Source: Bugula neritina (lineage: Eukaryota > Animalia > Bryozoa). From it: DNA of 64,000 bases. A program made the translations under genes and the position numbers. A model generated the notes under the pieces. That model had not been told where the DNA came from and did no database searches. It was given only the letters and a program-made list of their open reading frames with translations. The stretch covers positions 30,556,773-30,620,772 of the forward strand of contig OZ037766.1 in the NCBI GenBank assembly GCA_964035545.1, in the 5' to 3' direction. Positions within the stretch are counted from its first letter, which is position 1; each line of letters starts with the position of its first letter. Below, piece after piece: positions 10,742 through 63,992 of this stretch.

Positions 10742-13700
10742 ATGAATTTATATATTATTTCCATAATCAAATACTTTATAACCTGCTATGTGTTACATGC
10801 TACAGTTGAAGGCCAAGAGCTCTCAGGTAAGTTAGATAATATTATATGAACATATATATTTGATGTTTATCAATACATTATAGGTATAAAGATAACAATT
10901 ACATGTATGTAAACATGGTGAGAATTTTCTATGTAATCCAAACATATTGAACAAACCAATAGAATTAGATGTAAGTATTTTATCTCAAATTGTGTTACAT
11001 TGAAAGCTTCTCAGCACTATAGCCATCATGAAGTTTTGTTAAATAGAACAGAATTTATCTTTAAAGTGATGGCATTGCGGTACATTACGATCAAGCACTG
11101 CTTTGATCAAAAATGTTGCGTCAAACTTCTATTGAGCAGAAAAACTGTTGCGCTAACTCATTGGATATAATTGTCTAATGAAATGTCGTAGATCGTACCT
11201 AATTGCGGACTTTGAAACTTTCAGTTTGGACACATTAAAATTGGCTGATATTTTATGTTACGGCCTATGGTACGGTAAGTGTGAATGAGGGGTAATAATA
11301 AATGACTTGTATGACAAGTAGCACCTGCTCCTATTTAGACTTGTGATGTAGAGTTATCTGCTTAAACCACTATAATATGATCAACCTCACAAAGGTGTAC
11401 ATCAATACATGTGGAGATAACTTTCATTTATTAATCTGCTTTCAGTTGTAGCATATTTGCGTTCTTATTCGATTTTTAGAACTTCTGAGTCAAGTATGCC
11501 CAGGCCAGACAAACAGAACTCTGGAGAGATTGTACAGAAACCTCCAGCTCTCTGGGAACCTGTTTACTGGATATGGATACCAAATTAATAGATATCTACA
11601 GAGGCGTTACCAGAACTGCAAATATATTGTTGGCGGTGGTTTATATGTTGATTTGAGTGTCTTCTATTACAACTCAGAGTTGGAATTTCTAAATTCAATA
11701 ATTGACGTTGCAGGTTCAGTTTACATAGAAACAAACAGCAGATTTACATTTGATACAAAACCACCTGCCTTGGCAAATCTCACAACAATTGGTGGTAAAA
11801 TGCTGCAGCCTAATGAGTATAGTCTACAGCTAGTTTATTATAGTAGACTGACAAATGGTATTGGACTGAGTCGACTTCGTGGTATGTCATATAATCTATA
11901 TAGCCCTATAATGTTTGTATATATGTTCATGTCACTGCCTTACTGAGTTACTATATACATTATAAAAGTGTTGAAAAGGAAATTTAACTATAGGTTTATG
12001 AAGCTCTTTATTCAGCTTATTTGTGCAGAATTGGTATAAAGTCAAAAGCAGAATTGGAATTATAATACGCACATGCGATACACTTGTTAAAAACCTGTAA
12101 CTTTTTTGTGTATATATAGGTATAAACAGATGTATGTAAAAATTGCTTTCTAATAAAACTACTATATAAGCTCAGTTAGCTATTTGCAAGCTAACTCTAT
12201 TGTGAAATATAATATTTCTATCTGTTCTACAACTCTAACTCATATTATATAGCTTGTACTCAGAATGTTGAGTTTATTGGAAATGTTACTATAGGCAAGT
12301 AAAATAGTAAATTATTTTAATTTACTATACACTATTACAAGAAAATAGAGCTCTTTGATACATGCCTATCTTATATTTAAATCATAACCTGCTGGCTATA
12401 AAATGAAAGTTGTGAGTAAACTCCTAATAAAATATACTTTACCTTAAATTTGAACTTTAACTCAAACAGTTTAGAAAACAAAATGTTTTAGTATTGAGAT
12501 CACCTGCGCAGTCTCCCCATTGTAGGAGATATGCTATATGGTTATTGGGCTTAAGCTTGCAATAACATTTTTTATAAAATACATATATATACAGTATTAT
12601 ACTTTATTTATCTTTGTATTTTATATTTGTATATTATATATAATACATGCATCATATACATATATTTTATATATAAATTATATGTATATAATGTACTTAT
12701 ATATAATACCTACACATTTGTATATTCCCGTTTTTGCTGACATATTAATTTCTATATGAGACACCTAATTGAAAAACAAGTGTTAATGCAACAGAAGCTG
12801 TGTCTTTCACTGCGCTGGCAATATAGTGATAGGGTTTTTAATATAATACAACTATAATTGTGATCAGATCTCATTATAGGCTATACTGAAGCCTTCTGAA
12901 AATCTGTCCACACCCATGGCATTAATGGAAATTTTTTCATACTAATTATAATATTATAGTATAATTACTAGATCATTATTTTAATCTGGATGTAAAATTG
13001 TCTTAGTCATGGAATTGTTTTAATTAATTATATGATATACCGCTTAGAGGTTGCCAATGGAAACGTTGCTGTCAATCTCACCAACTGCTACAAACAGAAG
13101 ACAGACTGGTCAAAGATCACAGTACCAGGATCTGTGTACAGAGATAGTCAGAGAACCTGTACTTCAGGTTAGTACAAAAATAAACAGAGAGAGGTTGATC
13201 AGAGTTGGTAATTACTTTTTAAAGCAATTTAAAGCAATTTTAATTATTCGTCAATCAAAATACACTTTCTAGTTTAGTGAAAGCAAATTAGGTTATACTA
13301 TAATCCGGATGTTTTAAAACTCTTTGTGAAACTTGAATTAATTAGCTCTGAAAAATGTTAAATTGCGAGGCACGCTTAGAATATTTTTTTCATTACATAT
13401 TTGCTAACAATGCACTTGTTTTATAATTTTTTTATTGGTTATTTTTATGAAAATAGAAATATTAAATTTATAAGATTTATTGGCAAAGACCCTTTTGTAG
13501 GACGGTGTCATTCTTCTTGTCTGGGAAACAACTGCTGGGGACCAGATGCAGAAGACTGTCAAATAGACTTTACAAACTGTCATCCAAATTGTACTACTGG
13601 CTGTTATCATAACACAGCAAATCATTGTTGTCATGAGAGTTGCCTCACCGGATGTAGAGGACCAGCTGAAGCTGACTGTCTCAGAGTAGGTGTCTGACTT

Positions 13701-62400: not shown

Positions 62401-63992
62401 GAATACTCCTTCTCTACACTTCTGTCTTCTGATTGGCCCTCACACACTTGGTCTAGAAGTTCTACAAATTACCAACTCTTTTATAAACAAACTATAATAG
62501 AGCAGCCGGTTTAGGAGTTAGAAAGTTTGCCTCGTAAACACGAGGTCATTGGTGATGTTAAGAAGTGCATCCAGACATAATTGCTTCTGTGCCTCATTTA
62601 GATAAGTTTTTAGCCTGCTTTAACAAAAACTCTTTCTATCAGAGATTTCTCACAAAGATAGTGAAGATAAAGTTTTGTGAGTTTTTTTACAAACAAACGA
62701 TAACCAAAGTGAAGTCATCTAAGTTTTTTTAGTCTTGCTTCTATACTTTTTAAGAACAGCAAAATAATATATAAAAGAGCAAATGTTTGGTTAAAAAACT
62801 AAGTGTTAACTATATCAAACCCTTATCTTTGAAAAATCTTCAGCGTTGGCCATAAGTAAACCAAAGAATAGTAATTGCTAATAATAAATAACATGAAAAA
62901 TTCATCAGCTGTCCTTTTTATAACCAATTTTAATATTACAGTTTATAACACATTTTAAAGCTTTTTTGCTGTAATTTTTTATTAACAGAATTTTTTATTT
63001 TCTTTTTCAACAAATCGAACAACTTTTAATTAGTTTTAAATTTTTACTCTATTATAGACCTAAATACATGCATATATTTTAATTTATACTTTCCTGATAT
63101 AATAGCCGGTACTTCTATTGTTTGTTAGTCCGGAATGCATTTTCATGACACTTTCTTATTTAGAAACATTATTTTGCATTAAATAGTCATCTTATTAGTA
63201 CCGCATAAATCATTTACATTGTGCGAGAATGAAGGCTATGAACTCTTCATAACTCTTCATCGTGTCAACATAAAAGCAGATGCTTTATTTGCATAGCTAA
63301 ATTAAAGGTTCTATATGTACCACACAGCTCAACAATGCGAGGCGATTATTTCATGACAGAAAACATTTTTCTAATTCTGATAGAGAAGATAGTTTTTTCC
63401 AAAATATTTTTAGACAACAATAAGGGATAAAAATTTGTGACAAAGTGTTTTGGTAAGACAACTACTCGAATAAATTGACAAAAGCTTTTAGAAAAAAATA
63501 TACTGGTTGCCACGAAATTATTAACAAGCTCTCAGATGCATGATTAAAGTACTGGTAAAGAATTTTATGTCTGGGTTCTTCAAGTGTTTTTCAAATATAT
63601 AGTAAGAAAAAGAAAATTATACGTGATGGAGTAATTTAAGCATTGTAAATCTAAAGACAGCATAAAAACCACTTAAAGATCTGTGTTATAACTAACCAAA
63701 GCGTACAAATACTTTGTCATTGAATCAGTATTAATTATGTTCTAAAGTACATTAAATGCAATTTTAAAGCATATAATCAATAAAATAACTATACTATTGA
63801 GTATTGAGATATTGTAATATTTGAATAGTTTCAATAGGATGCTTATGAACTAAATTATCTAACTGATAACTTTTACAGCTTCTTATTGGTTTAATATTAA
63901 TCAATAAACCAACCAGAAAGTTGCTGACATTCTATTGTAGAGTACGATACCAAGCAAATCATTATGCAAACCTTTGCTGTTAATAAGAACAT
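50437..63992 (-). CDS. R4: inverted kinase-less EGFR-ectodomain-like receptor paralog with one FN3-like domain and a ~70-aa tail; 18 exons, ~1182 aa
   Basis: Exons (minus): 63914-63992, 62090-62461, 61041-61172, 60468-60652, 60152-60317, 59772-60002, 59027-59269, 57893-58108, 56741-57004, 56034-56237, 55616-55814, 54609-54802, 53860-54089, 53060-53193, 52209-52384, 51393-51527, 51067-51215, 50437-50676 (3549 nt). Signal peptide MFLLTAKVCIMICLVSYSTIEC on a 79-nt phase-1 exon like R2/R3; TM ALLTAILLAVICVLSIVLVTICIGYCL followed by TKKEK. Confidence 0.86.
51695..52000. repeat. ~23-bp minisatellite (GGGTTAATGAGTGTAGTGGTTTG), about 13 copies
   Basis: Direct reading; R4 intron. Confidence 0.92.
54162..54385. 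mobile_element. hAT-like MITE, about 224 bp
   Basis: TIRs CAGGGGTGGGCAACT and AGTTGCACACCCCTG (CAGGGG termini are typical of hAT elements); left flank TACTAGAG, right flank only a degenerate match. Confidence 0.75.
55383..55602. repeat. ~24-bp minisatellite (TTAGCACATAAAATACTGTAATGT), about 9 copies
   Basis: Direct reading; starts just inside the donor end of R4 intron 11. Confidence 0.88.
57283..57755. repeat. Irregular minisatellite built from 11-bp TAGACACCCTG / TAGACACCTTA units
   Basis: Direct reading; R4 intron 8. Confidence 0.9.

Follow-up and report, generated by a model that had tools for sequence, protein, structure and literature searches.

The bryozoan genome assembly deposited under the name Bugula neritina (GCA_964035545.1) contains a cluster of genes for membrane proteins that keep the complete ectodomain of the EGFR/ErbB receptors, lack a kinase, and carry two additional domains within their Cys-rich domain II. 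The window analysed is a stretch of 64,000 nucleotides (contig OZ037766.1, forward-strand positions 30,556,773 to 30,620,772; plain coordinates below refer to it), where a previous sequence-only reading had described a cluster of four kinase-less EGFR-like receptor genes. These four genes, A to D, are half of the actual cluster, which has eight members, the other four being intact paralogs (E to H) on the minus strand past the window end, and the whole family, spread over two chromosomes, comprises at least 15 genes. Few animal architectures are as stable as that of the EGFR ectodomain. The family would have been assembled from known parts into an architecture for which our literature search, of limited reach, found no description, in agreement with the earlier view of a lineage-restricted family with an unfamiliar domain combination, and its function is a predicted one. 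As a leading but tentative explanation, we propose that these proteins are recognition receptors of the cell surface, non-catalytic and derived from the EGFR ectodomain.

Gene models of the window were rebuilt from coordinates, with all exon boundaries fixed by coordinate, and database searches were done exon by exon. Gene A (10742-25666, plus strand) has 20 exons and encodes 1370 amino acids (aa) in the order signal peptide, receptor L domain 1 (L1), N-terminal part of Cys-rich domain II (CR-IIa), insert 1, insert 2, C-terminal part of domain II (CR-IIb), receptor L domain 2 (L2), Cys-rich domain IV (CR-IV), two FN3-like modules, transmembrane (TM) segment and last exon. Genes B (26723-36738; 19 exons, 1462 aa; inserts at 28953-31035) and C (38844-49442; 19 exons, 1563 aa; inserts at 41300-43447) lie on the same strand, and gene D on the minus strand (63992-50437; 18 exons, 1182 aa; inserts at 60002-56741), with one FN3-like module and a short tail. 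The four paralogs are intact and have matching exon phases, as first read: all introns are GT-AG, phases are equal exon for exon, each frame has a single terminal stop, and splicing of the exons originally listed gives intact proteins of 1182-1563 aa. In genes B and C, the intron that separates exons 12 and 13 has been precisely removed (32809-33229 and 44449-44869, respectively), and A and D-H retain it. Protein identities among A-D are 44-47%, with D as the most divergent and B and C 80% identical, and by hydropathy each protein shows a hydrophobic N-terminus and one strong TM segment. A partial copy of the start of exon 14 (53279-53330, minus strand) sits in the intron directly before the real exon 14 of D.

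The EGFR/ErbB ectodomain order L1, Cys-rich II, L2 and Cys-rich IV followed by one TM segment is present in the window genes, as indicated by Pfam, profile and PDB matches. In gene A, all on the plus strand, exon 1 (10742-10826) encodes a signal-peptide-like N-terminus by sequence and hydropathy, and exons 2-3 (11480-13167) the L1 domain, with a Pfam PF01030 match above cut-off on exon 2 (E 9e-5). Exons 4-5 (13501-14693) encode the N-terminal part of domain II, supported by the Furin-like profile PF00757 (profile positions 14-66, on exon 4) and by alignment with the EGFRs of the same genome, and exon 5 (14528-14693) carries the dimerisation-arm loop. After the two inserts, exons 10-12 (17410-19389) encode the C-terminal part of domain II (PF00757 positions 110-147, on exon 10) and the L2 domain, recognised by PF01030 on the equivalent region of the spliced family member P0008 described below. 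Exons 13-14 (19725-20798) correspond to a shortened domain IV of ~120 aa, with profile matches to domain IV of the genome's EGFRs and PF14843 on P0008. Exons 15-18 (21026-23101) encode two modules of ~100-120 aa of beta-strand type, FN3-like by eye, for which the exon-by-exon search gave no Pfam (PF00041) or PDB match, nor was there any profile match with the FN3 exons of the insulin receptor (InR). Finally, exons 19-20 (24350-25666) comprise a stalk, a TM segment split by a phase-0 intron and a kinase-free tail, the last exon contributing 134 aa of TM end and tail. The ectodomains of A-D contain no furin cleavage site (RxK/RR). Among the domain matches anticipated by the sequence-only reading, those for the receptor L domains, the Furin-like region, domain IV and a galactose-binding-like fold were obtained, and the FN3 one was not; its domain order left out some 325 aa that split domain II.

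This interruption is the most distinctive feature of the family, since domain II is continuous in EGFR/ErbB. Between the two halves of the broken Furin-like match, exons 6-9, all of phase 1-1, add ~325 aa that make up two repeats of two exons, that is, two domains of ~160 aa. The insertion point coincides with the phase-1 intron that directly follows the arm exon in the genome's canonical EGFRs. The split was confirmed in P0008, a B. neritina protein of 861 aa from an intron-free contig of run SRR4125604, which maps in 14 blocks to the B. neritina ortholog of the family member at C2:31.756 Mb. At least one member of the family is, therefore, transcribed with the insert spliced into domain II. 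The best PDB matches of P0008 are EGFR/ErbB ectodomains, and the contig ends in the intron after the TM exon, short of the tail junction.

The second insert domain (exons 8-9 of gene A, 16051-17000, ~165 aa) is assigned to the F5/8 type C, discoidin or F-lectin type of fold from the homologous domain of P0008. An AlphaFold model of the latter (predicted local distance difference test, pLDDT, 68) matches F5/8 type C domains, CBM32 and F-type lectins with a Foldseek E of 4e-4 and tied VIA Z scores of 7.5-7.6 (eel and bass F-lectins, SpX-3 and CBM32), which are moderate and not family-specific, and all its look-alikes in the ESM Atlas belong to the F5/8 clan (0.89-0.92). In this model, insert 2 adopts an F-type or galactose-binding-like jelly-roll. 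Moreover, a C3 gene array contains two-exon modules that match insert 2 with E values of 4e-5 and 2e-4 (calculated for a nominal million sequences); their first exon is of F5/8 type C (PF00754, one above cut-off) and their exon break falls at the same place. Such two-exon modules are found at no fewer than 150 PF22633 loci of the genome, and this ready donor pool leads us to propose exon shuffling: we infer that the insert exons derive from the genome's own two-exon F5/8-type C family. A large expansion of these modules, followed there by FN3-like exons, occupies C3:7.6-8.1 Mb (L033, L034) and many other sites. The first insert domain (exons 6-7 of gene A, 14854-15608, ~160 aa) is probably a degenerate galactose-binding-like beta-sandwich, linked through weak profiles only to insert 2 and to the C3 F5/8 modules. 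Its direct profile comparison with insert 2 is weak (P 0.026), so a common origin of both inserts rests on a bridge through diverged family members. As for the calcium motif h2DGx, A, E, F, G, H and P0008 preserve a DG resembling it in their second insert, and in B, C and D it is replaced, the DG match of D sitting at another position; no DG occurs in insert 1 of A-H. Single insert exons gave no match against Pfam, PDB sequences or the ESM Atlas, and an AlphaFold run on one half-domain insert exon reached a pLDDT of 41. Matches to P0003-P0005 corresponded to unrelated repeat proteins and not to relatives.

An EGFR origin of the family is supported by several sequence features: the best PDB matches, all EGFR/ErbB; an identity of ~30% to the three EGFRs of the genome in comparison with ~20% to its InR; the dimerisation arm; and intron positions shared with EGFR. 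The reuse of an EGFR scaffold put forward from sequence alone is in line with these data. The InR/Sdr pattern, where L1-CR-L2 is followed by three FN3 modules with neither domain IV nor arm, is not the one seen here, where both domain IV and arm are present. The genome holds one InR and exactly three EGFR-type kinase exons, those of the canonical EGFRs at C1:20.38, C4:24.26 and C5:9.99 Mb, in agreement with a metazoan survey of kinase-bearing sequences that counted three EGFRs in the bryozoan Membranipora (PMC4914847). A survey requiring the kinase would leave a kinase-less family invisible. A tree from which the inserts were left out separates the family (88/82) from the EGFRs (89/80), with neither group firm and the InR root forming a long branch; descent from the C1 EGFR paralog, a first impression, was not supported. 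Two more EGFR copies have a continuous domain II and, as far as their DNA was read, no kinase. The one at C2:27.00 Mb (L019-L020) is similar to the C1 EGFR and seems to end at the juxtamembrane segment, and the one at C2:25.17 Mb (L013-L015) is similar to the C5 EGFR and stops within domain IV.

The absence of a kinase, already noticed in the first reading, stood up to two kinds of search. Kinase motifs gave scattered single matches only in the six frames of the window, and 16 kinase-exon frames from the genome's EGFRs and InR gave no real match by tblastn against the window and 90 kb beyond (best E 0.07, controls 1e-68) and none against the other family loci read. By these motif scans and tblastn on gene DNA, the window genes encode neither a cytoplasmic tyrosine kinase nor a pseudokinase. 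What follows the TM segment is diverse, from short, motif-free tails (D, H) to YxxP repeats with four sites in E and five in F and the acidic tyrosines of the C2:31.76 Mb member.

Beyond the window, genes E-H have one FN3-like module, a Ser/Thr-rich, mucin-type stalk of 50-400 aa, a TM segment and unrelated tails. Genome searches with three independent exon profiles, counting loci that combine domain II and both inserts, gave at least 15 genes: the eight of the cluster (C2:30.567-30.678 Mb), two at C2:31.76-31.78 Mb and five at C6:9.41-9.60 Mb, with additional weaker matches at C2:30.8-30.9 Mb; the genes on C6 and at C2:30.8 Mb were read in part or not at all. The C6 gene that was read shows an in-frame tandem repeat of the block from exon 10 to exon 15 (three copies read, six implied by spacing); C6 genes repeat L2 without L1. 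In this family, domain II is seen to tolerate a 325-aa insert beside the dimerisation arm, and the II/L2/IV block to tolerate tandem repetition. The five C6 genes (L031, L035, L036) share about 16 L2-type modules, with at least one giant receptor among them. In the member at C2:31.756 Mb the FN3-like part is missing, and the tail is acidic and rich in tyrosine. Upstream of it, at C2:31.67-31.74 Mb, there are three tandem exons of tyrosine-kinase type, and the 3′ end of the member itself has no kinase exons.

Relatives in the databases are limited to JGI contigs named after a Bugula neritina mitogenome accession, an NCBI B. neritina hypothetical fragment and one Logan contig, and a scan of JGI metagenomes gave no further family loci. 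The public B. neritina annotation splits the orthologous gene into hypothetical fragments (EB796_024956), and an ortholog of gene C was found on a B. neritina-type JGI contig (L027). Both the B. neritina reference and the JGI contigs share ~81-86% DNA identity with the window genome, counting introns, from which we infer that the latter belongs to a sister species within Bugula.

These genes are under purifying selection, with ratios of nonsynonymous to synonymous divergence (dN/dS) of 0.24-0.41 in all 28 paralog pairs and an equivalent ratio (pN/pS) of 0.23 between orthologous exons of the two Bugula species. That the cluster could consist of decaying duplicates, or be an artefact of assembly or prediction, is hardly credible in the light of such values, of eight genes without a stop in exons 1-16, of the orthologs in a second species and of the spliced family transcript. 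In the region of gene B, the whole of 28100-31900 is covered by an independent DNA run from this species, introns included and with no GT-AG joints, which excludes an assembly artefact for the cluster; its summed depth over exon 4, ~7 times the background, is expected if near-identical copies exist. What would fit decay or artefact is that no RNA run contains the window genes, that the last exon of G is unresolved and its tail short or unresolved, and that the basic tail of B ends earlier than that of C, owing to a frame difference near the end of B.

The divergence among paralogs is uneven along the protein. Mean paralog identity is 81% in CR-IIa and 74% in CR-IV versus 51% in L1, 42% in L2 and 47% in insert 2. 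At the DNA level, A, B, C, E, F and G share 95-99% identity in exon 4, whereas their L exons are near saturation at silent sites. Between A and B, synonymous divergence amounts to 0.03 for exon 4 and 0.11 for exon 14 versus 0.58-0.99 for the L exons. As the simplest reading of this pattern, the Cys-rich exons have probably been homogenised by gene conversion. This mosaic bears on a further explanation, by which the proteins would be adhesion or spacer molecules of the epithelium or cuticle, long glycosylated rods that bind matrix or zooid cells and reach the cytoskeleton through Crk/Nck-type YxxP sites. The stalks of E-H, the tandem module amplification on C6 and the 6-21 N-glycosylation sequons would suit such rods, as would the discoidin-type fold, which often binds matrix or lipids. 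Adhesion leaves unexplained, however, the divergent L domains and insert 2 beside a homogenised scaffold and the retention of the arm, and we consider it improbable.

The arm itself calls to mind a role closer to that of the parental receptors. Its loop aligns and is conserved across all eight cluster genes, neither of the L domains nor any of the four EGFR ectodomain blocks has been lost, two further EGFR copies without a nearby kinase exist in the genome, and known kinase-less L-domain proteins (irld/hpa and DAF-2B, PMC9262388; Sdr) act as modulators. Accordingly, the family might modulate EGF signalling, either as membrane decoys trapping EGF or neuregulin between L1 and L2, or as kinase-free partners that engage canonical EGFRs through the arm and damp or re-route their signal, a real possibility that we nevertheless judge to be unlikely. 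A 325-aa insert between the arm and L2 would be expected to disturb the L1-L2 clamp. In sequence alignments, the arm is missing in P0008 and in the C6 gene, having been deleted in the C6/C2:31.76 Mb clade, and the window clade keeps it; the L2 repeats without L1 on C6 also fit this role poorly. The L domains of at least 15 paralogs are only 25-50% alike, for about two ligands: the surveyed bryozoan has only two EGF-type ligands (PMC4914847), a small number for so many dedicated decoys, which favours recognition.

As recognition receptors, the proteins would use their variable L1, L2 and insert domains to bind outside ligands, which might be glycans or proteins from colonies nearby, from microbes or symbionts, or from settlement surfaces. 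The scaffold would be maintained by the conserved Cys-rich exons together with the retained arm, which would also allow paralogs to pair; members whose tails have tyrosine motifs might signal through a separate Src/Abl-type kinase and SH2 adaptors, and short-tailed members could act as partners or decoys. Several observations weigh against this proposal. No domain has a dN/dS above 1, and no sign of positive, diversifying selection was seen. The signalling through adaptors suggested in the first reading finds motif support in E, F and the C2:31.76 Mb member and not in A-D, whose tails have no enriched tyrosine motif; even in E and F, the excess of YxxP stems from internal repeats. None of the RNA runs searched for window sequence contains genes A-D. 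The motif H-x24-R-x-D-x4-R/K for fucose binding, diagnostic of F-type lectins (PMC12221842), is absent in all 18 insert copies tested and in both C3 modules. The insert thus shares the fold but falls outside the F-type lectins, and glycan binding is a guess from the fold.

Comparison with known systems helps to place the family. With EGFR/ErbB it shares the ectodomain order, the Cys spacing, the arm (in the window clade) and the intron position after the arm exon, and it differs in having no kinase, two domains inserted in domain II, a short domain IV, an FN3-like or mucin stalk, ~30% identity and at least 15 paralogs. F-type lectins and CBM32 have the same fold as insert 2, most copies of which bear a DG like that of the calcium site, but here it is embedded inside another domain of a receptor. 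The insect InR decoy Sdr and DAF-2B of Caenorhabditis elegans also retain an RTK (receptor tyrosine kinase) ectodomain with loss of the kinase; they are, however, InR-derived, secreted by description and present in few copies, whereas the bryozoan proteins would be EGFR-derived and membrane-bound, with tails. Most nematode IRLDs are short L-domain proteins that lack the complete II/IV scaffold of EGFR; F5/8 inserts have not been reported in them, and their origin would be independent. They (e.g., hpa-1, hpa-2) form a large lineage-specific expansion of kinase-less receptor-L-domain proteins, often clustered and proposed to modify insulin/EGF signalling (PMC9262388).

A more specific version of the recognition proposal, which we hold as quite doubtful, sees in these genes a bryozoan system of self/non-self or symbiont recognition, in which exon shuffling would have turned an RTK ectodomain into a set of diverse paralogs, with paired activating and silent receptors kept compatible through gene conversion of the dimer-forming exons. 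Colonial animals offer precedents in Alr of Hydractinia and fester of Botryllus, which are clustered paralogs with a variable ectodomain and variable tails with tyrosine motifs. The resemblance is one without homology, and for the bryozoan family such a role would be a hypothetical one. To our knowledge, the molecular basis of colony and symbiont recognition in bryozoans is unknown, and these genes would be concrete candidates for either.

Other sequences were observed around the family. Between the two converging members at C2:31.77 Mb there is the end of an unrelated plus-strand gene with TM, tail and a short repeat stalk (L037:7496-8792), which B. neritina has as well (L039). Small contigs (C15, C33, C37, C44, C66, C105, C176 and others) carry many kinases without introns, read through TAA and TAG stops only, which are probably ciliate contamination of the assembly. 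In the window, the cluster is flanked by a WD40-repeat gene with a C-terminal Utp12 domain, PWP2-like, at 380-6800 on the minus strand.

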